Below, piece by piece: positions 1,176 to 48,027 of a stretch of 64,000 nucleotides of DNA (positions are counted from its first letter, which is position 1; each line of letters opens with the position of its first letter). The notes under the pieces were generated by a model. That model saw only the letters and a program-made list of their open reading frames with translations. It did not search any database and had not been told where the DNA came from. The translations under genes were made by a program, and so were the position numbers. Location of the stretch: sequence record LC727697.1; one strand, written 5' to 3'.

Positions 1176-1462
1176 CTACTTTTTAAAAACTTTTATGCTT
1201 GCAAGCACATTGCTTGTTTGCATGTCTGTAGTGTGTAGGATTTCGCAGGTATTGTACAATTGTATATTTCTATTAAGACAGGCACGTTAATAGACGACGT
1301 CTTTTCTGCATTTTGCTATGTAAAGCTACAGGTGTGCGCATGCGCATGGGCCCTAAAACGCGCTACAAGCGCGCATAACAGCGTTTGTGCGCGTAGCTGT
1401 ACTAACGCATTGCTTAGCACTACTACGCAGCATACAGCGCTTACAGCGCTTTTAGCGGCATT

Positions 1463-1573
1463 GCAAATGTGAATTATTCTTATTCTATCTATTGTAGCAA
1501 ATAAGAATTAATCGCAATTACAAATAAGAATTATTTACATCACTAAATGCAAATAAGAATAATTATTATTTGT
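1463..1573. promoter_or_regulatory. cluster of four Fur-box-like operators
   Basis: GCAAAT GTGAAT T ATTCTT (1463); GCAAAT AAGAAT T AATCGC (1497); ACAAAT AAGAAT T ATTTAC (1520); GCAAAT AAGAAT A ATTATT ATTTGT (1549). Confidence 0.7.
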
Positions 1574-4532: not shown

Positions 4533-4814
4533 TTGCTTTTCCTCGTAGATAAAAGAGTACTTCTTTTCTGTTCAATGCATGATAAATGCACTATTGATAT
4601 AATATCTAGCAGTTGAAGTTTCTTATCAAAATTCTCAGCAAACTTAATCTTTAGACAAAGAATGAACTTCATCTTTGTTCTTTTGGTGCTATATGCTTAC
4701 ATTTTTATTATAAACTATTATAGCATGATTGTATTTTATATAAACAGAAAGTTTGTAACAGGTTCTGCAAATTCTAATTATTTGCGATTGCATATATCAA
4801 AAAATATAGAACTA

Positions 4815-5569: not shown

Positions 5570-5776
5570 TTATTTGTATTGTTGAACAGAATAATCATGC
5601 CACATTTGATGTCCTCGAATCCATTCGTTACGTTCATACGGCTCATTTTTGGTATACGGGCAGTCTGTATATTTCTGCCCTAGTTTAGCTGCATGAACAC
5701 CTTCGCTAAACGGAGAAAAAGATGCACGCTCGCACAGAAATTCATCTACCAGCATGTCTGTTGTTTTGTTACTCAT
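5570..5776 (-). CDS. ribosome modulation factor (Rmf)-like protein
   Basis: EG..AA..G.....CPY......R.EW.RG pattern resembles Rmf GY.AG..G.....CPY....RS.WL.GW. Confidence 0.5.
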   Translation of the reverse strand: MSNKTTDMLVDEFLCERASFSPFSEGVHAAKLGQKYTDCPYTKNEPYERNEWIRGHQMWHDYSVQQYK

Positions 5777-6095
5777 TATACACCTCTTGTTTTTGTTGTG
5801 TAGTTTCGCACGGTGTTTCTTTTTTATCAGATAGTGCTGCGTTACCTGCTAATCCCATTCCTACCAAACACAATACTGCCGCAACTACCAGCCCCCAGCT
5901 GGGACCAGTATTATATTTGTGCTTTTGGATATCCATTAACACATTTTCACATACAGCATACGGATCATCTCCACCGCATGCTATGCAATTACAGTATACG
6001 CTCATTTTATTTCGACCCCTCTGAGAATTGTTTGTATTTCTAATTTCTCTTCTTCTACTTCGGGTGTTGGTATAGCATATACAATTACTTGGCAA
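5769..6095 (-). CDS. membrane protein (likely start MSVYCNC at 6005)
   Basis: Single TM segment, overlapping stop/start with 6002-6277. Confidence 0.6.
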   Translation of the reverse strand: MPSNCICYTNTRSRRREIRNTNNSQRGRNKMSVYCNCIACGGDDPYAVCENVLMDIQKHKYNTGPSWGLVVAAVLCLVGMGLAGNAALSDKKETPCETTQQKQEVYNE

Positions 6096-6277
6096 TTTTC
6101 ATTTCTTGGCAATTCTGCTTCGCAAGACTTTACAAGTTCTTTATACTGCATATATAACGAAGCAGACTCAGAATTCGACGCTAGGCTGTATCCTATCAGA
6201 ATGCCAGTTACAAAAAAACATATAGAAGAAATTATTAGTATTCTTTTAGCTCTGTGTGTATCAACATATTCATTCAC
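6002..6277 (-). CDS. membrane-anchored protein
   Basis: N-terminal TM, CE...C periplasmic part. Confidence 0.7.
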   Translation of the reverse strand: MNEYVDTHRAKRILIISSICFFVTGILIGYSLASNSESASLYMQYKELVKSCEAELPRNENCQVIVYAIPTPEVEEEKLEIQTILRGVEIK

Positions 6278-6470
6278 AGAACTTCTCCTAGCTTACAGTC
6301 TACTGCCTCTTCAAATTCAGCATAAGACATTTGCTGGTTATCGAAATAAATAACGTCATGAACGGCATCATAAATGTAAGTATAAATGTTGCCGAAATAT
6401 TTAATCTGCACAGAATTTAAAAGTTTCTTTTTCAGCGACATAACTGCTACTCCTGCGGATTTATGAGTTA

Positions 6471-6499
6471 AATGTACTATGTTAACAAGCTACAGTCAA
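6471..6499 (-). promoter_or_regulatory. sigma70-type promoter
   Basis: TTGACT-17-TACATT. Confidence 0.75.
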
Positions 6500-6518
6500 C
6501 TGGTATTTTTCTTAAATT

Positions 6519-6543
6519 GCAAATAAGATTAATTCGCGTTTGC
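6519..6543. promoter_or_regulatory. Fur-box-like operator (25-bp form)
   Basis: GCAAAT AAGATT A ATTCGC GTTTGC. Confidence 0.7.
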
Positions 6544-6557
6544 TAGTTAGCAGCCGC

Positions 6558-7042
6558 AAAAAAATCCCATCTAAGGGATCCTTTTGCCCAAAAACATTCG
6601 ATTCAGACATCTGTCTTTTAAACGAATCGAAGCGGTGTTTCGGCATTCATAATTATCATCATCATAATGTATATTTAATGCTGCGGCGGCATACTCTTCA
6701 CCTCCAGGAAGCATATAATAGTTTTAGGTTAATGATTCCTACTAGCACTAAGGCATATGCCAGTAGACCGTTTTAAGACCTGCTACAAAGCGGGGTAAAG
6801 CATAGATACATACAGTGTACCTTTGTAGCTGTCCCGCCTGTAGCAGCAAGGTCTAGCAGTGTCCAGGGGCAGGTACGTCATTGACCGATTTCCGATTTAA
6901 GGAAAGGTATGCTGCGCCTTCCACGTTACTAGACCTTGTACACCTGTTTGCCGCAGCCCGCGAACATCGCGGGCGGGCTGCTTGCGGGACGGTGTCTCCC
7001 GTTTAGTGTTGCTTACAATGCGTTATGCTGTATTGCTTTGTG
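6558..7042 (-). ncRNA. candidate structured ncRNA 1 (about 480 nt)
   Basis: Promoter 7048-7076, terminator-like hairpin 6558-6581, no long minus-strand ORF, many long helices. Confidence 0.7.
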
Positions 7043-7047
7043 TGTTT

Positions 7048-7076
7048 ATAATACGTAAAACTATGCATGCTGTAAA
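7048..7076 (-). promoter_or_regulatory. sigma70-type promoter
   Basis: TTTACA-17-TATTAT. Confidence 0.8.
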
Positions 7077-7295
7077 CTGAATTTTAAAACTTTTTGTGAT
7101 CTATTTTGTAACGCATGCAATGAAAATGAAGAATATTACATTGAAAAATATATAACTATTACAGACAAAATCTAATCTTTCCTTATAAAAAGTATAATCT
7201 TTATACAGTATCTGTTTATGCATTTTTATAGTTAATATATTAAAATATATCGATACTATTATAGATACAAATGCCTAAATACTTAAATAAAGCAT

Positions 7296-7484
7296 TCATT
7301 TCATCTCAACAAAGGCAAGTGCAAATATCATAAACGATATAACACATAGAATTACTCCGCCTATGCTGAAAATATAACTACCTACTAACCCTCCTAGCAT
7401 TAATCCTATTGTAGGATTATCTACCATAAATACGCCTAGTAACAGAACAATGATACCTATTACACTTGAAAGAGCTTTTTTCAT
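7296..7484 (-). CDS. small membrane protein
   Basis: Almost entirely hydrophobic, 62 aa. Confidence 0.7.
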   Translation of the reverse strand: MKKALSSVIGIIVLLLGVFMVDNPTIGLMLGGLVGSYIFSIGGVILCVISFMIFALAFVEMK

Positions 7485-7771
7485 AACCGAATTCCTTTAA
7501 TCGGGACAGATACTACTATGCATACACTGTCTTCTGCATTACATGCAAACATGTATTTCTTTTGTCCGTCATGCATTACACATTCGAACATTCCGTTAAC
7601 AGCATTATTGCAATTAACTTTCCCTGTTAATCCAAACTCTTCGTTTAGATATGTTTCTAGATCCTGTTCCATAATGAGGGTGCTCACATCTTTATTTGCA
7701 GAATCTGCTGCATAAGTATGAGCTATTACTGTGAGACCCAAAAATGCAACGAGACACAGTGTATTTTTCAT
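7481..7771 (-). CDS. exported/periplasmic protein with signal peptide
   Basis: Start MKNTLCLVAFLGLTVIAHTYA-A after GGAGA SD; four Cys in the mature part. Confidence 0.7.
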   Translation of the reverse strand: MKNTLCLVAFLGLTVIAHTYAADSANKDVSTLIMEQDLETYLNEEFGLTGKVNCNNAVNGMFECVMHDGQKKYMFACNAEDSVCIVVSVPIKGIRL

Positions 7772-14983: not shown

Positions 14984-15140
14984 AGTATGTTCCTAATAAT
15001 CAAAACATTGTAATGTACATTTGATTTATGCAGTGTAACACATATATCAAACTGTCAACAAGTAACAGCCATATTATGCCCTTGTATACATATATGGTTA
15101 ATACTATAGTAGATATTCACAGTAGCTAACGCTACATGTG

Positions 15141-15842
15141 AATTATTGTTTAGTTTTTATCTTCATATTCATTACGATAAAACTAAACAATAATTAATTC
15201 TTATTTGTAATTATATTGCTTTTGCTCTTGCTCTTAGCGGTAAGGGTGAAGGCCCTTAGATGCTGTGCAAAGCACAGCAGAAGCGTCCATTTCCAAGTAG
15301 GTTCAGGAAATTATATTCTCCCGTAATTACGGGAGAATATAAAACCCATATGCCAATATAGGACGAGGGCATAAGTACTCAAAACCATTTCGTAATATGG
15401 ACGAGGCGGGGACCTTTTTCCTCAGATTACATCATTCTCTCATTGTTTCCAATGAATCCCGGAACATCGATGTTATATACCTATGCTAGAAAATTTACAT
15501 CAATGCTGAAGTTGGTGTGTATATTCTTTTGTATATCCGTGTGAAATACAAGCAAGAATTACACTCTGTTTCTACCAGAGCTTCATCCTTTTATTACATA
15601 TCTAATATCGGATAAGATATATAATACGTTTCGCATAGTCCTTTGCAACATTAGACATATCCTTGTCTAACGACTATACTTCAGCACCCAAAATCATAAT
15701 TTAAATAACCCACTTTTGTATGCTTTAATCTGTCTCTAACAGAACAATACTGTGGGCACGATGGGGATAGTTTCTACTACCAATATCCAATAATGGAACA
15801 GAGCTGCTTGTGAATGGAACAAAGTAGCTGTTACGACAGCAT
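15141..15842 (-). ncRNA. candidate structured ncRNA 2 (about 600-700 nt)
   Basis: Consensus promoter upstream, no ORF of 60 aa or more, nested helices, GAAA tetraloop, terminal long hairpin. Confidence 0.7.
15311..15342. repeat. perfect 32-bp palindrome
   Basis: TTATATTCTCCCGTAATTACGGGAGAATATAA. Confidence 0.95.
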
Positions 15843-18523: not shown

Positions 18524-18748
18524 TCATTTCTTATTCCACGACATATCTCTAATATAGTGTTCATAACTTCCTACAGGTATTGTATTAGAAATAATTTTAG
18601 ATACAAGTATGTTATTATAAAATGGATAGGTTATAAAAATATCAGCGTCGCGTGTTATTATGTCTATGTAACAGCATTGTGTCGCTGGCATAGAATACCA
18701 AGTTATTGCATACAAACTAGCTGATATAGAAAATATAGTTAAAGACAC
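18524..18748 (-). CDS. hypothetical, family-like N-terminus
   Basis: SLTIFSISASLYAI. Confidence 0.5.
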   Translation of the reverse strand: MSLTIFSISASLYAITWYSMPATQCCYIDIITRDADIFITYPFYNNILVSKIISNTIPVGSYEHYIRDMSWNKK

Positions 18749-18781
18749 AGTAGTATAGTATATAGATTATATGGTCATGAA

Positions 18782-18808
18782 GAAAGGGGAGCAAATTGCT
18801 CCCCTTTC
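18782..18808 (-). terminator. intrinsic terminator
   Basis: GAAAGGGGAGC-AAATT-GCTCCCCTTTC. Confidence 0.8.
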
Positions 18809-18823
18809 GGCGCAGTTGGGCAA

Positions 18824-19528
18824 TTACTTGCTTTCCTGCGCCGCCCCGGCGATCGCTGCGTTCTTTTCAGCGACCTTTTCGGCGCGCTCAGCTTCGCGCT
18901 TGGCCTTGCGTTCGTCAGCTTCGCGCTTGGCAGCCGCCGCTTTTTCTTCGCGTTCCTTCTTCTCGGCATCGCGCTTGGCCTTGCGTTCGGCAGCTTCTGC
19001 CTCGGCCTGCGCTTTGCGGTTGATCAGGAAGCCCTTGCCGCTGTTCGCCTTGCCGGCGCCGAGTTCAAAGACGAAGCCCAGGCGACGCAGCTTGTTGCCG
19101 ACGGAAGTGCTGTTCTGCTCGAAGTTGGCCTTGTCGACCCCGTCGAACACCAGGGTAGCTTCGTCGAAGCCGGTGTGGGTGATGGCCGCCTTGACGATCG
19201 CGATCGCGTTGCTGAGCCGGCTTTCGTCGGTGAGCGGTTTCGGACCCTTCTGCCCGGGAACTTTCGGTTCCGGGGTGTACTTGGCCGCCAGTTCCTTGCC
19301 GTCGAGCGCCTGCTCGATTTCGCGGGTGATGCGGATCGCGCTGAACACTTCCTTCTGCTCGAACTGTACGACGGTGCCATCTGCCAGTTCGACTTCGGCG
19401 GTCGCCGACCAGGTGCGCTTGCTCGGGGTGGTGTAAGTAGCCATGGTCTGGCCGATGACCACGCCGTTGATTGCCAGTGCCAGGACGTGCTGTTTGTCGG
19501 TACGTTGACGAGTGATATGTACGGACAT
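18824..19528 (-). CDS. early protein with Ala/Lys/Glu/Arg-rich coiled-coil tail; paralog of 659-1114
   Basis: Strongly GC3-rich codons, GAGG SD, tandem promoters, terminator. Confidence 0.9.
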   Translation of the reverse strand: MSVHITRQRTDKQHVLALAINGVVIGQTMATYTTPSKRTWSATAEVELADGTVVQFEQKEVFSAIRITREIEQALDGKELAAKYTPEPKVPGQKGPKPLTDESRLSNAIAIVKAAITHTGFDEATLVFDGVDKANFEQNSTSVGNKLRRLGFVFELGAGKANSGKGFLINRKAQAEAEAAERKAKRDAEKKEREEKAAAAKREADERKAKREAERAEKVAEKNAAIAGAAQESK

Positions 19529-20113: not shown

Positions 20114-20132
20114 AATAAGAGAATATCTGCTC

Positions 20133-20410
20133 AAAAAGAAAGGCAAACATAAGTCTGCCTTTCTGATATAAATGCTCCTCAGAACAGTCACGTGCTCTGT
20201 ATCTGGGCAAATTATGCTCGTCAGCACAACGGAGCGGTATATCTTGCCTAAGGAATTGTTATTTGTATAAAGCCCCTTACTCTTTATACTCAGCTAGAAT
20301 ATACAATACTAAGGAATCACTAGCATCATCCTTAGGTCTATCTGGTTATACCAGAATCGACATATCTAAACAACATAGGAGGTATTTACGTATGCAACAG
20401 CGCATAACTT
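20133..20410 (-). ncRNA. candidate structured ncRNA 3 (about 275 nt)
   Basis: Promoter TTTACA-17-TATACT (20417-20445); terminator AGAAAGGCA..TGCCTTTCT-TTTT (20133-20164); several hairpins. Confidence 0.65.
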
Positions 20411-20630
20411 GTATATAGTATATGCATATGTGTATGTAATGTAAATGTTATTTTTATTAATTTACAGATAGTTTCTGTTCTTAATCTTTTCTAAACTATC
20501 AAAAATAAAAGATTAGCCAATGCATCGACAACATGCGCGATTGCATTTTGCATATACACTCAGAACACAAAATGTAAATGCAAAATGCAAATGCGGATCC
20601 GAGTTTGTGCCTAAAATTGAATTTGGAAAC

Positions 20631-20673
20631 CGGAATTGCGATTTAGAATTCCAAAACCTAAATCGCAATTCCG
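20631..20673. repeat. perfect 16-bp inverted repeat
   Basis: CGGAATTGCGATTTAG-11-CTAAATCGCAATTCCG. Confidence 0.95.
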
Positions 20674-20686
20674 AATGGCCGAATAC

Positions 20687-21094
20687 TTACTGATGAATGC
20701 CCATCTGGTGTTTCAGGTACTCGAGGGCGTTGTAGCTATTGCACTCGGCTTCGCTGCGAAGCTGACCTTCGCTTGCCGGGTAATATAGATCGCCTTTGCC
20801 TTGTGCTAGCAAGAAGCACATAGCACGAACGAGACCTTCAGACTGCACATGACTTACAGAAGACATCTGTGCATTGAGAAGTTCGGTGCCGTTAAACTCG
20901 ATGTAGTCGCCGCTTTCGAGACGACTCGCAGCATGTTCACGTCCGGTCTTGCGGTTGAAGTTATCCATTTCCGAACATGCTGCTACGGAAATACGGATCT
21001 TGTTGCCGGCGGTTTCCCAGGCAACAGTAGCGCCACGGCGGTTATCGATCTGTTGAGTTTCTTCGTTGTAGAAACGAATGTGAGTATGTTGCAT
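20687..21094 (-). CDS. conserved-looking phage hypothetical protein
   Basis: G.TVA...A.CS..DNF.RK.GR..A..RL motif; GC-rich codons. Confidence 0.8.
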   Translation of the reverse strand: MQHTHIRFYNEETQQIDNRRGATVAWETAGNKIRISVAACSEMDNFNRKTGREHAASRLESGDYIEFNGTELLNAQMSSVSHVQSEGLVRAMCFLLAQGKGDLYYPASEGQLRSEAECNSYNALEYLKHQMGIHQ

Positions 21095-21602: not shown

Positions 21603-22266
21603 TCAATTTTTATACAGGAAATCAATATATACATCTATGCCAGTATCTGGAGGCCAAGGATAAGCCCAACATTCGTTACTAGTAATATCTCCCATCACCC
21701 TTTCACTTATTATATTTGAAATACAGAATATACCTATATGATTTTTTAAATTAGTTAATATAATATATTTGTATGGTTTTGATACAAATATTAATTCACT
21801 AACACCATTAAGATTATATAGCCGTGCCATATCATGTCTTATACTAATATAATCACTAGCACTCGAAAATATTAATATTTCAATCATATGGTTTGTGCAT
21901 ATCCTTTATACATATCCTCGTAAATTCTGATACTATTAGTACCTATTAATGAAAATATAGTTATTCTATCAGCATCTCGAAAATATGTAGGTTTTGAAAA
22001 TCTAAGAATGTCATAAAAATGACAATCTATAAAGTGACATCCTCTTTGCAATTTAAATATATTGAATTTCATACTAGTATACCTGTATCTAAAAATCTAT
22101 ATATTGCAGCGTTTACATAGAATGTTTGATGTATATATTTTGTTATTGCAGGTAATACATATGTAGCGCCTACAGAATAATTATAATAGGTATCATTACT
22201 AATGTATATTCTATTCGATTTCATCAAAATAGATGAAGAATTATAAGACAGATCGAATATATTCAT
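21603..22266 (-). CDS. three small ORFs (21603-21887, 21884-22072, 22069-22266), microprotein family-like
   Basis: EILIFSSASDYI, NIFKLQRGCHFI, NIFDLSYNSSSI; overlapping stop/start. Confidence 0.6.
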
Positions 22267-24335
22267 CTACTGTAAAACTCGGATGTATTACAATTCTGCT
22301 ATTCGTTTTATATAATACACAAATTGAATCATAATTTACATCTTTAATGAAATATGTATGATAAAAAAGTCTGATAGTCATGCAATTTTGTGATATTACA
22401 AATATACGCATATCATTTAAGTATTTTTATATCTCGGGAATACCTACCGCTGTCGTTACGTTCAATTAGAATGTAATACACATTGCCTGACTTAAAACGA
22501 GCTTTCTGCAAAGATATGGAACATAATGTGAGTTGATATTGTAATAGATCATTCATATAGTATGCCTATTTAAAAGAATTCTTCTTACACTATTAAAATT
22601 TATATAAATTTATTTTCAACTGAGCACAATAATATTGTATAGTTCCTAAAAGACAATATGAATTATATATTTCTATTGAATCACTATGTTGTCTGTCTAT
22701 TTTGTAGCAACTAGCAGACAATTTAAATACCCAATCGATCATTTTAGTTTTAGATTCTAAAAGTATTTTATTTTACTTACAATCTTAATATAAAATATAA
22801 TTCTTTAATAATAGGTGATTCTTTGTTTGTATCTTTATTCATAAATTTTTATGCCGAAAAATACAACTTGTTTTTGTTAATTAATACTTCGGTGATCGGG
22901 CGGCAGAAATATAGCATGAAATAACTCAATTTCCTCGCCGGCTTTTTCATAAAAATGCAAGTGACGCCACATTAACTCCATCTTAATTGTATCCACCCTG
23001 CGTTGGAACTGTAGCAATATATCTAACATATATGTAGTCCTGTACAATAAATTACCACTAACATTTTTCCATAAATATAAACTTCAAATGTTTTATTAAA
23101 AATAGAAAAACTAATTAAAGAAACATTAAAAGAAATAAAAATAAGATTATACACCATACAGTATAGTTCGTGTAGTTTGACACGGAAAGATAGTAATATT
23201 ATTATATATTATGGAAACTGATATTACTGATCTAGTAAATGATTCAAATGATATAGACTCTACACCGCTGCATACAGTTAAAATGTAATTATATTTGAGA
23301 GTATCTATATATTCTAACATTTTAAGAATTGTTTATTAATATATAACATACCTGACTTAATATATACAATAAGACAGGAAGGCTGTCGAAAAATCTTTAT
23401 TTTATCTGCACGATTAGACATATACAACAGTGTAGTGAAATGATGATCTTGCATTATAGTTTCCCACACGTTGTATAATAATGGTAGTAGTATTTTCCGA
23501 TTGATTTAAATATAGAAACACGTAATACTTTGCTTGTTCTTCTTTCTAATATTATTTTTGACGTGTTATGTGATATTAGAACTATATTTTTACGAATCAT
23601 ACAATACTATAAAGTAATTCAATACATGTCGTATAGTTAATAAGCATATATTATATGAAAGATAATCCTATACATGCAAATGTAACCTACATTATACAGA
23701 TATAGTTCTTAAGATGCAACGCAATTATGTACAAGTGAGAGATATATTGAAATTCTTGCAGAATCATATCGCACAACATGAACTCTAAAAGTATGATTCT
23801 GAATAACAAATATAGAAACATTTTTCTTTGCTGCTCTATTCATTTATTACTCTCATGTATTAGTAATTAACGATATGTTTATTTGTATCTAATTATTACA
23901 ATGAAATGTATGTCATCATTTTTGTTTAGAAAGTTCACAACTAAAATATCACTGTTTTTACAAAAACGAAACATAATATTAGAAGTATTGTAAGAACATT
24001 CAAGGATACTGGTCATGTTATATATGCAAACGAGTCTACCATATAAAATGCAAGACCGTCTTTTGCCTTTATGAGTATCGAGTAGTATACTATATCTCTA
24101 AGTCTTGCTGTATTTGCACATATTTCGTATGCATGCGATGAAAATTCTATTATATCTTTTATACCATTCATCTTAGATATGCAACACTAATTATAATAAT
24201 TTTTTCATTACTATTATAAATGCATGCTAATAGATACGTGCTACATAGCGATGAATCTATTGTATGTGCGCATGAAGATACCTGCAACATATCATAATGT
24301 ATATCGTGATTTATAATATTTTTATTTATGAACAT
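22241..24335 (-). CDS. string of 45-56 aa single-unit microprotein ORFs below the ORF-track cutoff
   Basis: Manually translated: 22241-22411 MRIFVISQNCMTI, 22413-22556, 22593-22742 MIDWVFKLSASCYKI, 22877-23029 MLDILLQFQRRVDTI, 23314-23454 LLYMSNRADKI, 23454-23600 NIVLISHNTSKI, 23879-24016 MTSILECSYNTSNI, 24013-24171 DIIEFSSHAYEI, 24168-24335 DMLQVSSCAHTI. Confidence 0.6.
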
Positions 24336-38992: not shown

Positions 38993-39214
38993 TTACCAAT
39001 ACTTTTTTCTTCGTTTATTCTTCGGTAACAAATGTTCCCCGGATAATTTTTTTATCATTTGCCGTTGCTGCTCTTGTGCAGTTTGTTTACAAGACTTAGA
39101 ACAATATAGTCCCCAACCTCTTTTAACATCGGCAATTCTTACTTCGAATACATTATTACATTCTATATTATTGCATGTTATTTTAGTTTTCTTTCCCCTA
39201 GGCGTTGTTGACAT
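38993..39214 (-). CDS. small zinc-finger protein
   Basis: C...C ... RGWGLYCSKSC. Confidence 0.7.
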   Translation of the reverse strand: MSTTPRGKKTKITCNNIECNNVFEVRIADVKRGWGLYCSKSCKQTAQEQQRQMIKKLSGEHLLPKNKRRKKYW

Positions 39215-39303
39215 TTAATTACTCGCAACAATACACTGTGTATTAGAATGCACAGTGTATATTATAGATAGTTGAATGCATGACTTACTTTGTTTCTTAC
39301 TAT

Positions 39304-39332
39304 AAAAAAAGGGCACAATGTGCCCTTTTTTT
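39304..39332. terminator. bidirectional intrinsic terminator
   Basis: AAAAAAAGGGCAC-AAT-GTGCCCTTTTTTT. Confidence 0.85.
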
Positions 39333-40298
39333 ATATTTTACTTCTTGCCAGTGGAAGAAGTAATAATTTCTTTACCGCAAACAGTGCAACGATAGCCCTT
39401 AGTAAACACGTTATGCACACGATTACCTTTGCCGTACACACTGTCCTGGAAATCATGTGCGCATTTGCACGATTTGATATTATCCACGTTTACCTCTGCT
39501 AGTTAATGTGTTGAGTGTTTAGTATACTGTTTTATAACAACGAAATCTAGCATTTTTTTAAATTCTTATAACTGGTCCAGCCTAAGCCCCCTATTTCATG
39601 CGAAATATAAGTTGTATAATCATAATTACCTATACTCATCGATCTTGTATCATAAATCATACGTCTATACAAAACTATCCCTTTTTCTCCCCGGACCCAT
39701 ATACATGTATATATGGTACTTGGTTCTATGCATATTTGGCGTGCATTATAAGACAGTTTTAGGATCATATTTAGTTTTTACCTTAGCAAAAATAAATCCA
39801 AAATCATTTACAAATGATATAATGTAAACTGTATTACCTTTTATGTCTTTTTGTACATGTTCTACTATATGTAATTTTATAGAATTATACGATAATCCTA
39901 TAATAGAGGTATTGAAATTTGGATTATATGACATATTAGAATCCTTCTTATATGCAAATATTTATTGCTTAGATTCTTAATATATTATATCTATTAATAC
40001 GTTATAATGTAATTCAGAGACATTCAGGTTATATTTGTTTTCTAAATATAATCTCACTAAGTTTGTTTAGTGTTATTATCTTTTTTAGATTTATTTTCAT
40101 TTCTTTCTTCTATACAAAACGATAATAGGTTTATAACAGTTGGTAGTAAGCAACATGTAGCTAAATTAGAAACAATGTCAATTCTTATTAAACTATATAT
40201 TTTATTAAAAATGGAAATAAAAAAATTAGAATATTTAATAGAAACAACGATTGTACTATTTCTAACTACTCTAGATAATTTACATAATAATGATAGAT

Positions 40299-43799: not shown

Positions 43800-43889
43800 T
43801 GGCAGATACTGTAGGATTCGAACCTACGGAGCTTTTTCAAACTCACTTCCTTAGCAGGGAAGCACCTTAAGCCACTCGGTCAAGTATCT
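43800..43889 (-). tRNA. tRNA-Ser(GCT)
   Basis: Cloverleaf, long variable arm, anticodon loop CT-GCT-AA, TTCGAAT, CCA. Confidence 0.95.
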
Positions 43890-43894
43890 ATATT

Positions 43895-43984
43895 TGGCGG
43901 AGAGGGTGGGATTCGAACCCACGGGACCTTTCGATCCGCTAGTTTTCAAGACTAGTATAATAAACCAGACTCTATCACCTCTCC
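43895..43984 (-). tRNA. tRNA-Ser(TGA)
   Basis: Cloverleaf, long variable arm, CT-TGA-AA, CCA. Confidence 0.95.
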
Positions 43985-43998
43985 AAAACTAGTTAATT

Positions 43999-44358
43999 CT
44001 ATTCGTAAATTATTCTACAATGTTGTTTTCCTGCAACTCTATCTAAATAACCAAGTCTAGCTAAAATAGCTGGAGCTACATTATTATATTCATCTATAAA
44101 AGATTTAGGAACATTATATAAGTATGCACTTTGGTCATTATCGAATTCTTTACAAAAGATACCATAAAAGTGCGGAACATAGGGATTATCTTCGAATTCC
44201 TTATTTTCTAAAATCTTATCTTCTAAATACGCATCATTTGCAAATAATCTAATATTTTTATTTATTTTATTAGATTCGTATTCCGAGTCTTCGTATATAA
44301 TTTTTGCATCGGCAGTAGGAAGATATATTCCGTATACAATTTGAATTTTGGAAATCAT
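43999..44358 (-). CDS. hypothetical protein
   Basis: 119-aa ORF, AGAG SD. Confidence 0.65.
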   Translation of the reverse strand: MISKIQIVYGIYLPTADAKIIYEDSEYESNKINKNIRLFANDAYLEDKILENKEFEDNPYVPHFYGIFCKEFDNDQSAYLYNVPKSFIDEYNNVAPAILARLGYLDRVAGKQHCRIIYE

Positions 44359-45170
44359 TTAAAATTCTCTTTTGTTATTTTATGCACTTATTATACGAAA
44401 TAATTATACTTTTGTCAAATGTTATTTTGTATATTTAAAAGAAATCATCATAAGAATGTACTACAAGTATATATTTTTCTTATTAAATATCCGTCGGGAT
44501 CTATTATAAAAATATTCAAATGCTTTGAATAAAAAACACCATTAAAAAAGTAAGTAGGGGATATTCGTATAATACCTTCGTTAGCATTAATAGATATCCT
44601 AAATATGTTTTCCATAAATCCACACCGTTATTATGTGTATTTATGGTTTTATTTCTATTTAGAATAGTTATTATAATAGATATATAATGGTTATTTAAAG
44701 GTAAGTCAATTTATAAAATAATAGATAAGCTAAAAATATTTGCATGCAATTAAAAAATCAGTTGTTTTATCTACAACATATATTTCTAATTGTTTTCTAT
44801 TGCTTGTCGGTTTAGTTTTTATCGAAACACATATAGATTTTGTATAAGACAACCTAGAAATGCTATATACATTTTCACGAAAAATAGACAAATCGAGTCT
44901 AAATATGCAACCTGCCATTTAATGTTGGTTCCTTAAACAGAACAATATCAATTTATATTTTTATTCTATCTGTCTAAAAACCATAAAGCATAATTTCCTA
45001 TATTAGGAAGGTATAAACATAAACAATGAGATTTTCTTACATACAATAACTCTGTTGTGTATGCCTGTATTTCCAGCACCGTTATATTAGATGGTATAAC
45101 TAATACTTCCATATTTATCCACTACACGAATCATCGAATAGATATACCAATCAATTATATTAGAATATTG

Positions 45171-45243
45171 AGCAGCCCACGGGACTCGAACCCGTAACAT
45201 CTGACTTGGAAGGACAGTGCTCTACCAATTGAGCTAGGACTGC
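45171..45243 (-). tRNA. tRNA-Gly(TCC), no encoded CCA
   Basis: GCAGTCC/GGGCTGC acceptor, CT-TCC-AA, TTCGAGT. Confidence 0.9.
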
Positions 45244-45252
45244 ATAGTAAAT

Positions 45253-45329
45253 TGGTCTAGGCAGGAGACCTCGAATCCCCAACCTCTTGCTCCCAAAGCA
45301 AGTGCTCTACCTACTTGAGCTATGCCTAG
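45253..45329 (-). tRNA. tRNA-Pro(TGG)
   Basis: CTAGGCA/TGCCTAG acceptor, TT-TGG-GA, CCA. Confidence 0.9.
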
Positions 45330-45338
45330 ATATAAAAC

Positions 45339-45415
45339 TGGTTGCAGGGGTGGGATTCGAACCCACGATAAAAAGGTTATGAGCCTTTCTGCTTAGACCT
45401 CTTGCATACCCTGCG
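45339..45415 (-). tRNA. tRNA-Met(CAT), initiator-like
   Basis: C1:A72 mismatch, G11-C24, CT-CAT-AA, CCA; only two G-C pairs in anticodon stem. Confidence 0.85.
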
Positions 45416-45438
45416 ATAAAACTATATTGTTATATTAT

Positions 45439-45771
45439 TTACCATTTTAAATTTTTAATCTGAGAAAAATCAAATTCCGGAAGTATGCATTTATCGTCTA
45501 GATAATCTTGCATAATCTTTACATCATCAGGCGAACACGAACCTGTACTAGATTGCCACAGGCTCATTATATCTTTCGAATACATAGATCCACGACTATG
45601 TATTCCGTATCTACAGTGCATATTGTCTTTTACTATGCCAACTCTTGCTTTTCCGGCATCGAAATAAACAATATTATATATTCCGTCTATATATGAAATT
45701 AGACGTGCATTTTTTCTATTGTTACGCTTTATCCATTTTAGAACATCTGTATCATTAGAATAATTATTCAT
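45439..45771 (-). CDS. conserved-looking phage hypothetical protein
   Basis: 110 aa, GAG SD. Confidence 0.7.
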   Translation of the reverse strand: MNNYSNDTDVLKWIKRNNRKNARLISYIDGIYNIVYFDAGKARVGIVKDNMHCRYGIHSRGSMYSKDIMSLWQSSTGSCSPDDVKIMQDYLDDKCILPEFDFSQIKNLKW

Positions 45772-45799
45772 TATTTGAGGTACTCTTATATATACATGT

Positions 45800-46042
45800 T
45801 TATTCTAAAATTATTTTCCCTTTACCGTATAATTCTGTATTATACCAAGCTACAGAGTATAAGTAAATAGAATTATATTTAATATCGAATATGTATATTC
45901 CGCTAGTATCAGTTCTAATACTGAATGCTTGTTGTTGAAGCCAAAATAATTTTATTTGTAACGATAACTCTTTGCATTTCCTACAAGTCGATGTATGCTT
46001 TTTGATTGTTCTGTATTGTAGATGTTCTTTGCATCTATTCAT
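45800..46042 (-). CDS. hypothetical protein with Cys/His motif
   Basis: C..H ... C..C at N-terminus. Confidence 0.5.
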   Translation of the reverse strand: MNRCKEHLQYRTIKKHTSTCRKCKELSLQIKLFWLQQQAFSIRTDTSGIYIFDIKYNSIYLYSVAWYNTELYGKGKIILE

Positions 46043-46310
46043 ATTATTAATATAAATTTTTATACTATAATATTTTTATAGCGAGTCCAGCCTACTAAAC
46101 AGGTATTGTGCAGATTGTAGTTCGAATCAATTCCGATTAATACTCGTCCTATATAATTTTTTCGTAAGTTTAGCTGACCTGGACTGATCCGAGTTTTTCT
46201 GCACACTTCAAATATATCTTTACCTATACAACAGAAACCTTGTTTCATACTATAACGAAGAAGTCTTATGTCAAATCTTATTGTTTGCATAACACAACAC
46301 TCTTTAAAAT

Positions 46311-46387
46311 TGGCGCGCCCGGAGGGATTCGAACCCCCGACCATCCGCTTAGAAGGCGGATGCTCTATCCAGCTGAGCTACGAGCGC
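46311..46387 (-). tRNA. tRNA-Arg(TCT)
   Basis: Cloverleaf, CT-TCT-AA, CCA. Confidence 0.97.
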
Positions 46388-47293
46388 ATATCTTGTGCAA
46401 CTAATGATAGCTTTGTAATAATGCTTTGTATGCGTAACATTATATACTGTTTTGTTTGTTCGGTCAACTATTTTTATTAAAATATATATCTATACAATTA
46501 AGTAATGATCGACGTAACATTTATGAAAATAACTACCACTATTTATTAAGTATAAAGCTATTACGGATTTCTCACAAAAAGTATTTTTACTGACTACAAA
46601 CCCTTTGTAGATTTTTGCATGACATACGATGCGTTCTAAATAGTACGAATAGGAAAAAATACAGTTCATTATCATCATCTTAGCCGTACAATATAACAAT
46701 TCTTATCTAGCCGAACATACCATACTATTTCGCCAGAATAAACACAAACTATGGATTCCGACCATTTTAATAACGACAATTTACATATCAATGTTTTATG
46801 CGAAATAGTTAAAATTTTTTCCATTCTTTATTCTATGTAATAAAGTTAATAAGAAATACTAAGTATACCGCAATATCGATAATAAACAGAATTGCTATAT
46901 ATTATCTAAGCACTTCCGGTATTTGTTACAATAAAAATATTATGTATTATAGAATATAACGGAACATCGGATGCAAATAGTATCTTATCTTAAATATCAT
47001 AGTAATAGAAAGGATAGTAACAGATCTATTATCGCATAACGATATTATGTTGAAACAAGGCATGTATATTACTTCTGTTGAGTATTGTAAATTAATAATG
47101 TATTTCATTTTTTAATTCTATATTGCATTGTATTTCCATGCCATAGAAAATGTACCGATATCAAAATGTACCCATAATGTAAAAGATCTATTATTTTTTA
47201 TAGTGACTACTAACTTGTTTAATACGCGATATTCTATTACGTATGTGTTGGCAGATATATGCATTATTTCATTCATAATAAAAATATCATAAT

Positions 47294-47325
47294 AAAAAAG
47301 GAACATACCATAATATGTTCCTTTT
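47294..47325 (-). terminator. intrinsic terminator
   Basis: AAAAGGAACAT..ATGTTCCTTTT. Confidence 0.75.
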
Positions 47326-47334
47326 GTAGGAGTT

Positions 47335-47419
47335 TGGTGCCCGGTGCCAGACTCGAACTGGCACGACTTTCGTCGGGAGATTTTAAGTCTCCTGTGTCTA
47401 CCGATTTCACCAACCGGGC
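47335..47419 (-). tRNA. tRNA-Leu(TAA) copy 1
   Basis: Cloverleaf with variable arm, CT-TAA-AA, CCA. Confidence 0.97.
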
Positions 47420-47469
47420 ATATTCATTCATTATATAGTTTAAGTATAGTTTGATTTGTATATAAAAAT

Positions 47470-47546
47470 TGGTGGGACTTACTGGATTCGAACCAGTGAC
47501 CTAGCGATTATGAGTCGCGCGCTCTAACCAACTGAGCTAAAGTCCC
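47470..47546 (-). tRNA. tRNA-Ile2(CAT, lysidine) copy 1
   Basis: Anticodon arm GCGA-CTCATAA-TCGC like enterobacterial Ile2 (C29-G41, G30-C40); CCA. Confidence 0.85.
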
Positions 47547-47615
47547 GTTTGAAACATTATATGAATATTTTATTTAGACTATTGTATCTCTTTAGATACA
47601 AATGTTATTTAAAAT

Positions 47616-47691
<76 letters not shown>

Positions 47692-47717
47692 ATATTGAAT
47701 ATACAACAAAGTGTAAT

Positions 47718-47793
47718 TGGCTGGCTAGGTAGGACTCGAACCTACGACCCAATGATTAACAGTCATTTGCTCTACCGACTGAGCTACTAGCCA
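47718..47793 (-). tRNA. tRNA-Asn(GTT)
   Basis: Cloverleaf, CT-GTT-AA, CCA. Confidence 0.97.
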
Positions 47794-47843
47794 TTTAATT
47801 TTAGAATAGTTTCCTATCTTGTTAAGTATTTATATCTTTTGTT

Positions 47844-47928
47844 TGGTACCCGAGACCGGACTCGAACCGGTACGCTGCGAAGCGGGAGATTTTAAGTCTC
47901 CTGTGTCTACCAATTTCACCACTCGGGC
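47844..47928 (-). tRNA. tRNA-Leu(TAA) copy 2
   Basis: Cloverleaf with variable arm, CT-TAA-AA, CCA. Confidence 0.97.
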
Positions 47929-47950
47929 TAAAAGCACAACATCTTAAAAT

Positions 47951-48027
47951 TGGTCCCTCGAACTGGATTCGAACCAGTGACCTAGCGATTATGAGTCGCG
48001 CGCTCTAACCAACTGAGCTACCGAGGG
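47951..48027 (-). tRNA. tRNA-Ile2(CAT, lysidine) copy 2
   Basis: D, anticodon and T arms identical to 47470-47546; different acceptor stem CCCTCGG/TCGAGGG. Confidence 0.85.

Follow-up and report, generated by a model that had tools for sequence, protein, structure and literature searches.

Introduction

Wroclawvirus, the sole genus of Arenbergviridae, includes Pseudomonas phage sp. 30-2 and phage PA5oct. Strand-specific RNA sequencing (RNA-seq) of PA5oct revealed four actively transcribed regions without plausible open reading frames (ORFs), and one of them, ncRNA002, was among the most abundant phage transcripts in early and middle infection (Lood et al. 2020, PMC7318152). It accounted for 4.65% of phage reads at 5 min (early), 5.04% at 15 min (middle) and 1.23% at 25 min (late). 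The infection was sensitive to rifampicin and depends on the host RNA polymerase (PMC7318152). We found no later papers on the structure or function of ncRNA002. Here we analyzed a locus of phage 30-2 (record LC727697.1), a non-coding RNA (ncRNA) gene on the minus strand at positions 6558-7042 of a stretch of 64,000 nt. This whole stretch is called the window below, and all coordinates refer to it.

Other RNAs can be compared with this one. The large RNAs GOLLD and ROOL are carried by phages, usually near tRNA genes. Transcription of the prohead (packaging) RNA of phage phi29 begins at a strong early promoter close to a genome end. In Pseudomonas, RsmY and RsmZ titrate the regulator RsmA, and CrcZ, which is similar in length to the RNA of phage 30-2, titrates Hfq/Crc. 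Base-pairing small RNAs are typically much shorter than ~485 nt. Many "ncRNAs" of Pseudomonas phages are products of premature termination in 5′ untranslated regions (5′UTRs) (PMC10914365).

Orthology with PA5oct ncRNA002 and distribution

The sequence of Pseudomonas phage sp. 30-2 (LC727697.1, bases 6400-7200) is 100% identical to the 801 bases around the locus. Only ten other phage records matched these 801 bases, all of them PA5oct-like jumbo phages of P. aeruginosa (94.7-99.6% identity). The phage 30-2 record has no annotation between the genes at 7296-7484 and 6274-6441. In the PA5oct record MK797984, the feature at 21951..22401 (EST35_0068) is annotated as "putative lncRNA; ncRNA002; annotation based on RNA-Seq data" (lncRNA, long non-coding RNA), and it maps by alignment to approximately 7029..6575. 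The phage 30-2 sequence matched this feature over its full length at 94.7-94.9% identity, with 94.9% for the first 353 nt of the RNA. The position is also the same, since the RNA sits between 62-aa and 55-aa early genes, on the strand of its neighbors, as in PA5oct. The two RNAs are alike in their flanking genes, promoter and terminator and are both without coding capacity. The PA5oct type differs in the tip of a hairpin named H2 below (a 3-nt indel and about a dozen substitutions) and in an AT-rich spacer. Judged from sequence and position, the phage 30-2 RNA is the ortholog of PA5oct ncRNA002, i.e. the same gene. The gene is thus already known, having been published in 2020, and is not a new discovery.

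Using exact proteins of the flanking genes, we gathered 45 loci with 18 distinct RNA variants from Logan, ENA and NCBI contigs. All of them belonged to Wroclawvirus and were at least 93% identical. In one Logan contig, SRR8668314_78020, the 62-aa and 55-aa genes were 81 nt closer together than in most other loci, and the difference lay upstream of the RNA. No relatives outside Wroclawvirus were found by a distant-mode blastn search of phage and plasmid sequences, by an exact 20-mer in IMG/VR and JGI metagenomes, or by two 24-26-nt patterns in GTDB genomes; exact-pattern scans reach not much below ~90% identity, and the absence of relatives holds at that sensitivity only. The flanking genes are orphans. 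The 55-aa protein formed a single 90% cluster among 5.8 billion proteins, and therefore synteny offers no route to distant relatives. A neighboring gene similar to RMF (described below) led to no locus outside Wroclawvirus in IMG/VR. No paralogs were detected by BLAST in the rest of the window or among PA5oct ncRNA001, 003 and 004, and a covariance model of the core of the RNA (R1) matched only itself. The initial annotation of this locus had proposed an uncharacterised phage RNA class. It is true that no Rfam family covers the RNA. However, the RNA had already been annotated as ncRNA002 in PA5oct, and "class" is too strong a word because all 45 loci come from one genus at 93% identity or above.

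Promoter, terminator and transcription unit

A transcription unit of ~485 nt (6558..7042, minus strand) is delimited by a promoter, a terminator and the PA5oct RNA-seq annotation. The promoter (7048..7076, minus) is of the sigma-70 type, with a −35 box TTTACA at 7076-7071, a 17-nt spacer and a −10 box TATTAT at 7053-7048. It agrees with the consensus at 10 of 12 positions and is the top site within 6000-7600. It has an A/T-rich stretch upstream and was unchanged in all ten aligned relatives. Transcription would start at ~7041. At the other end, the intrinsic terminator (6555..6587, minus) is composed of a stem, a 6-nt loop and a U7 tail that ends at 6558 (−19.1 kcal/mol, mean pair probability 0.98). 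The ncRNA002 feature of PA5oct, as defined by RNA-seq, ends within this hairpin. A consensus scanner missed the terminator (6587-6558). In our reading of its rule, an upstream A-run extends the stem into the U-run and leaves no T tail to count.

The initial annotation had described a strong promoter (7048-7076) and a U-tailed hairpin (6558-6581) on either side of about 480 nt with no sizeable minus-strand ORF. Both signals were borne out, and so was the view of an independent, structured, non-coding unit on the minus strand without a conserved ORF. Thus, 7041..6558 (minus) is a self-contained, independent ncRNA gene of ~485 nt. That the locus produces a real, independent and structured ncRNA is, in our opinion, very probable.

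Predicted structure

The full transcript folded with z = −6.3 relative to dinucleotide shuffles. We considered whether its mixed composition inflated this score and dropped the idea: the score was still −5.4 when shuffling was confined to blocks of 30-50 nt, and therefore mixed composition is not the cause. As had been noted initially, the core is more GC-rich than the genome (GC 0.47-0.62 across 6750-7050, compared with a window mean of 0.32). For the 209-nt core (6945-6737), the minus strand gave z = −4.5 and −80.8 kcal/mol, and the plus strand gave z = −2.95 and −71.3 kcal/mol. The transcribed strand is thus predicted to be 9.5 kcal/mol more stable than its complement, a difference that would fit the several G-U pairs present on the transcribed strand only. 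In the ensemble of the full-length RNA, three core hairpins (A, B and C) and the terminator had mean pair probabilities of 0.90-0.98. The long-range closing helices differed between the predictions for phage 30-2 and PA5oct and are not reliable.

All elements are on the minus strand, and the RNA is numbered from 7042 (RNA position 1). The 5′ leader (7002..7042, RNA 1-41) is A/C-rich and essentially unstructured (−3.4 kcal/mol, z = −0.6), and only two of its sites varied among the 18 variants. It is followed by the invariant hairpin H1 (6985..7001, RNA 42-58), with a 5-bp GC stem and a 7-nt loop (mean pair probability 0.83), and by H2 (6950..6984, RNA 59-93), which is GC-rich and has a hypervariable tip. 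Hairpin A of the core (6847..6938, RNA 105-196) comprises 92 nt. Its 12-bp basal helix contains a perfect 10-bp inverted repeat (6847-6856/6929-6938) at the base and leads into a rod that is interrupted irregularly by internal loops and capped by an apical loop of 7 nt (mean pair probability 0.92). Hairpin B (6780..6846, RNA 197-263; mean pair probability 0.91) includes the helix 6833-6846/6780-6794. Because there is no linker between A and B, the two could stack coaxially. A 12-nt linker separates B from hairpin C (6738..6767, RNA 276-305; mean pair probability 0.90), whose 11-bp stem is strand-specific because it has three G-U pairs. The loop of C varies in sequence and length, with a 2-nt insertion and substitutions limited to the loop. 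A perfect 10-nt palindrome (6752-6761, minus) lies across the stem-loop boundary of C. It was weakened by G-U pairs in five variants and lost in three, and by our estimate ~0.5 such palindromes per transcript are expected by chance.

On the 3′ side of the core, a weakly folded stretch (6675..6737, RNA 306-368) carries a GGAGG/AUG element and is conserved, with 47 nt invariant in the 18 variants. Next come an AT-rich hypervariable spacer (6646..6674, RNA 369-397), the 3′ hairpin H3 (6588..6643, RNA 400-455), whose inner stem is 6597-6604/6624-6631, and the terminator (RNA 456-488). The four helices that had been named from the sequence at the outset, i.e. those in A, B and H3 given above and the H1 stem (6985-6989/6997-7001), were all present, and the helices of A and B do abut directly. 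The initial annotation had also described two mutually exclusive pairing registers at 6953-6981, in H2. Both exist in the phage 30-2 type, but they are not kept in the PA5oct-type variants, and a two-register switch was rejected for this reason.

Sequence variation and selection

Nucleotide diversity was measured over 13 loci of six kb. It was 0.017 in the core, 0.005 in the leader plus H1 and 0.012 in the GGAGG stretch, compared with 0.006-0.053 in the flanking genes. Intergenic DNA had a diversity of 0.14 at 7077-7295 and 0.10 at 4533-4814, so that the three-hairpin core is 6-8 times less variable than true intergenic DNA in its vicinity. These two intergenic regions were hypervariable and rich in indels, with 31-42% of columns variable. 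Within the transcript itself, two patches behaved like unconstrained DNA: the tip of H2, where 25% of the columns varied, and the AT-rich spacer, where 41% did so at a diversity of 0.064. The RNA is under purifying selection.

The substitutions in the core also showed a pattern. Six of the nine fell in unpaired positions (loops, bulges and linkers), two preserved a pair and one broke a pair. The pair-breaking change was a singleton from a metagenome contig. The pair-preserving changes were G-C to G-U, and G-U to A-U at 6838/6788 in hairpin B, the latter in seven variants. Within hairpin A, the variable sites were in the loop, a bulge and an interior loop, besides a single G-C to G-U change and a mismatch seen in one variant. 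All three core insertions were in the linker or loop of C. When the core mutations were re-placed at random, so few disruptive changes (P = 0.045) and so many unpaired ones (P = 0.027) were both rarely obtained.

Similar observations were made outside the core. The changes in H3 were in the apical loop or were G-C to G-U. In the 3′ module of the PA5oct type, three seemingly disruptive changes amounted to a one-base register shift that gives the same fold. H2 occurred in three sequence types (the phage 30-2 type, the PA5oct type and that of variant L016), which differ at ~13 substituted positions and by a 3-nt indel. Each of them is predicted to fold into a GC hairpin at the same site (−17.8 to −22.3 kcal/mol). 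A change in H2 within the PA5oct type turned a C-A mismatch into a U-A pair.

Coding potential

We checked the ORFs of at least 20 aa in 16-18 variants and against Pfam. A coding role of the longer minus-strand ORFs (47, 44 and 33 aa) was rejected, as each was frame-broken in some relatives. The 47-aa ORF is broken in the PA5oct type and the 33-aa ORF in four variants. The 44-aa ORF, which runs through the terminator, is frameshifted in variant L033, and a count by hand gave ~3 synonymous and 8 non-synonymous changes, a neutral pattern. None of the ORFs at the locus matched Pfam. In the records of Cassandra, Deifobo, PAC2, Paride and Ettore, 3-4 small "hypothetical protein" coding sequences (CDSs; 32-44 aa, both strands) are annotated over the ncRNA. 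They are probably spurious because the ORFs are not conserved and have no Pfam match.

The conserved 3′ stretch holds a GGAGG (6705-6701), an 8-nt spacer and an ORF of five codons, with its ATG at 6692-6690, the peptide MPPQH and a stop at 6677-6675. The GGAGG, the spacer, the ATG and the four following codons were invariant in the 18 variants. The stop was TAA, or TGA in the PA5oct type and in variant L046. In the predicted fold, the two proline codons are the pairing partner of the GGAGG, and the loop of the resulting hairpin (−9.5 kcal/mol) contains the AUG. The probability that the GGAGG is unpaired is 0.24-0.43. A search for the minigene elsewhere by a degenerate scan of JGI metagenomes gave three matches, all of which were a different frame of one conserved protein-coding gene.

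Comparison with known RNAs

At the gathering threshold, none of the 4227 families of Rfam 15 matched the locus, and the matches in the window were 12 tRNAs elsewhere only. The scan covered 6S, tmRNA, RNase P, SRP, GOLLD, ROOL, HEARO, OLE, group I/II introns, small ribozymes, riboswitches, pRNA, RsmY/Z, CrcZ and CRISPR repeats. At E ≤ 10, five noise matches were found at the locus (11.8-19.2 bits), all far below threshold. ARAGORN detected no tRNA or tmRNA gene in 6000-7500. These searches agree with the initial annotation, in which tmRNA, SRP, 6S, RNase P and hammerhead motifs could not be matched. Its suggestion of a ribozyme, sponge or scaffold fared less well, as no finding points specifically to any of the three. 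A direct-repeat family like that of type III antitoxins was not found within the transcript.

GOLLD and ROOL, large ornate RNAs studied by cryo-electron microscopy (PMC12286853), resemble the phage 30-2 RNA in being large, highly structured, apparently free of protein and without known function. However, the phage 30-2 RNA is shorter, gave no match to their covariance models even at E ≤ 10, is limited to one genus and, at the low divergence of its variants, showed no two-sided compensatory changes. It is also not beside tRNAs, the tRNA array being ~37 kb away. This array consists of 12 tRNA genes at 43803-48027 (minus), and PA5oct was likewise reported to have 12 tRNAs (PMC7318152).

An abundant, stable, rod-like RNA in a phage wholly dependent on the host sigma-70 polymerase also recalls 6S RNA, a polymerase decoy of about 180-200 nt whose large central bubble imitates an open promoter. 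The phage 30-2 RNA is ~2.5 times longer, and its hairpin A has small internal loops only. Because the predicted fold has no large central bubble and there is no Rfam match, 6S RNA was rejected. RsmY, RsmZ and CrcZ are not matched in Rfam either. The RNA contains nine GGA motifs, compared with 7.0 ± 2.3 expected (P = 0.24), and most of them are in stems, with 2-3 unpaired; an RsmA/CsrA-sequestering RNA, in which hairpin loops would expose many such motifs, was rejected on these grounds. On reading the leader, we saw no repeated A-rich motif. The prohead RNA of phi29 is likewise a phage-encoded structured RNA, but again there is no Rfam match, the abundance of ncRNA002 falls late, when packaging occurs, and ncRNA002 is not known to be linked to virions. 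The 5′UTR-derived phage ncRNAs (Putzeys et al. 2024, PMC10914365) are alike in forming a promoter-to-terminator unit upstream of co-oriented genes and in being conserved across a genus. In contrast, the phage 30-2 RNA is much longer and more structured, it has no anti-terminator, and the next gene has its own conserved promoter.

Possible functions of the RNA

It seems that the fold of the core is under selection, and so are the sequences of two single-stranded stretches, whereas no reading frame is kept. As there is also no extended complementarity within the 64 kb, an action in trans through the shape of the RNA is the most likely explanation. The RNA would be a stable, high-copy ligand that binds a host or phage protein early in infection, when the phage takes over a cell on whose RNA polymerase and ribosomes it has to rely. 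We favor this whole explanation, a self-contained ncRNA gene whose product is a trans-acting, fold-dependent protein ligand, only tentatively, at slightly short of an even chance. For its part that the ligand is a protein-binding decoy or scaffold, our expectation is a little lower still.

Several results weigh against this explanation. The collection of homologs and the covariation test proposed in the initial annotation did yield 45 loci and 18 variants, but no two-sided compensatory change was found in 158 predicted pairs (10 sequences). At such low divergence, the 18 variants had one-sided compatible changes only, plus an H2 tip that was replaced yet still folds. With 93% identity or more among all variants, the evidence for the structure comes from thermodynamics and a modest test of the substitution pattern. 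We consider the predicted structure supported, not proven. When the whole window was scanned in fixed 200-nt windows with correction for GC content, the best of those at the locus ranked 48th of 2554, and with optimised phase it would come 8th. The locus thus belongs to the best-folding parts of the window but is not unique, and other regions fold comparably well for their GC content. The expression evidence comes from the RNA-seq of PA5oct only and was read across to phage 30-2 by orthology. Being confined to one genus, the RNA may be a lineage-specific accessory. We identified no protein partner or protein-binding motif, with GGA motifs not enriched.

A different possibility is that the leader (7042-7002) and the stretch 6737-6675 pair with host or phage RNAs, so that the RNA is a base-pairing regulator or an RNA sponge. 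The structured core and the terminator U-tail would then supply stability and a platform for a chaperone. The two weakly structured stretches are indeed as conserved as the helices, the U7-tailed terminator is preceded by an AU-rich single strand, and the RNA is abundant early. But in the 64 kb of the window, the best complementary match (17 nt at 88%, E = 3.7) was no better than chance, and ~485 nt is far above the usual size of base-pairing small RNAs; we regard such a role as unlikely. We judged it more improbable again that the RNA is a cis-acting leader, i.e. the 5′ part of an mRNA of the early genes from 6441 whose transcription stops prematurely, with conditional read-through as in an attenuator or riboswitch. 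Those genes are co-oriented and start 117 nt past the terminator, the terminator is preceded by a short ORF with its GGAGG, and many phage ncRNAs of Pseudomonas arise by premature termination, as mentioned above. However, the gene with its ATG at 6441 has a separate sigma-70-like promoter between the terminator and its start (6471..6499, minus; 9 of 12 consensus positions), which is conserved. The intergenic region 6442-6557 as a whole is highly conserved (diversity 0.007). Moreover, H3 and the terminator form together, and Rfam gave no riboswitch or leader match. A leader-peptide attenuator in particular was rejected, because no upstream segment competes for the 5′ arm of the terminator and the stop of the mini-ORF is ~90 nt before the terminator stem.

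The invariance of the GGAGG, its spacer and the ATG, with a stop kept as TAA or TGA, might instead mean that the RNA is a messenger or has a dual function. The MPPQH ORF (6692-6675) would be translated as a micro-peptide, load ribosomes and thereby stabilise the RNA, or act as a minigene that ties up translation components. By our rough estimate, the chance of such a GGAGG-plus-ATG arrangement in 485 nt is ~0.03. An RMF-like gene with a weak match lies 0.8 kb downstream, and any link to it is speculative. On the other hand, the GGAGG pairs with the proline codons and is mostly not free, the AUG is in a loop, and the "ORF" may be just one arm of a helix. The JGI matches proved to be another frame of a conserved gene, and the longer ORFs either evolve neutrally or are interrupted in part of the variants; we consider this option very unlikely. 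Only marginally less improbable is a GC-rich insert between promoter and terminator that is transcribed as a by-product, with no sequence-specific function. It would agree with the occurrence in one genus without homologs elsewhere, the lack of strict covariation and the presence of other GC-rich islands in the window. It is contradicted by a diversity 6-8 times below that of adjacent unconstrained intergenic DNA, by substitutions that avoid breaking helices, by the neutral change seen in the H2 tip and spacer of the same transcript, and by the extreme abundance of the transcript in PA5oct. The least probable option, to which we give hardly any weight, is a role at the DNA level or during transcription, e.g. 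an R-loop transcript that primes replication beside the AT-rich 6646-6674. A strong early promoter followed by an easily melted AT-rich stretch, the late drop in expression and an RNase H-like protein encoded by PA5oct (PMC7318152) would be in line with it. However, the RNA is slightly C-rich rather than G-rich (the GC skew of the plus strand is positive at 6750-7050), and therefore a stable R-loop is not favored. In addition, there are no iteron-type repeats, the skew has no inflection at the locus, and the AT-rich patch is the least conserved part.

A bolder reading is also conceivable, in which the RNA would be the first member of a novel type of large phage RNA directed at the translation or transcription machinery of hosts that are not growing. 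In one form, a decoy aimed at the ribosome or the polymerase would act together with the neighboring RMF-like protein and aid Wroclawvirus replication in dormant Pseudomonas. In another, the RNA would assemble itself into a particle like ROOL or GOLLD. The evidence is not specific for either form, and we consider this reading improbable.

Other features of the window

The RMF-like protein has 68 aa and is encoded at 5570-5776 (minus), four genes downstream of the RNA. It matched the Pfam family RMF (ribosome modulation factor) with E = 2.5e-5 and 24.7 bits, just below the cut-off of 27.9 bits. The same weak match is precomputed in all relatives, and no PDB sequence match was found.

The window also contains the ortholog of PA5oct ncRNA001 at ~20131-20445 (minus). 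Its promoter (TTTACA/TATACT) is at 20445-20417, and a hairpin resembling a terminator lies near 20161-20131. In PA5oct, ncRNA001 is a second abundant lncRNA with 2.4-5.1% of phage reads (PMC7318152). It is unrelated in sequence to ncRNA002. The PA5oct CDS annotated right after ncRNA001 begins inside its terminator-like hairpin. For PA5oct ncRNA003, the range in GenBank is 103065..103668, which overlaps an annotated CDS, and that in Table 1 of PMC7318152 is 103065..103368.

Several 200-nt windows out-folded the fixed windows at the ncRNA002 locus for their GC content: 39201-39400 (plus), 15101-15400 (plus), 1351-1550 (minus), 18651-18850 (plus) and 20501-20700 (both strands). They may hold further structured RNAs or terminators. 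Two further GC-rich islands, at 601-900 and 18800-19400, had a GC content of 0.63-0.68, compared with the window average of 32%.

Implications

The existence of this RNA will be no surprise to specialists. Our analysis adds a domain map and the exact coordinates of the promoter and terminator, excludes several specific functions and reveals a core that evolves as slowly as genes while two patches evolve freely. Given its abundance, its clear domain layout and the biology of these phages in dormant hosts, the RNA is a well-defined target to be probed for its structure and its partners. Phage therapy counts PA5oct-like phages among its candidates, and one of them, Paride, was reported to kill deep-dormant, antibiotic-tolerant P. 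aeruginosa (PMC10761892). A factor resembling those of ribosome hibernation, in the early region of a lineage that includes this dormant-cell killer, may merit a look. In these phages, which depend on the host polymerase, a single ORF-less RNA of ~485 nt takes ~5% of phage reads in early and middle infection (PMC7318152). For a phage able to grow on dormant hosts as well (PMC10761892), a 6S-like decoy would be fitting.

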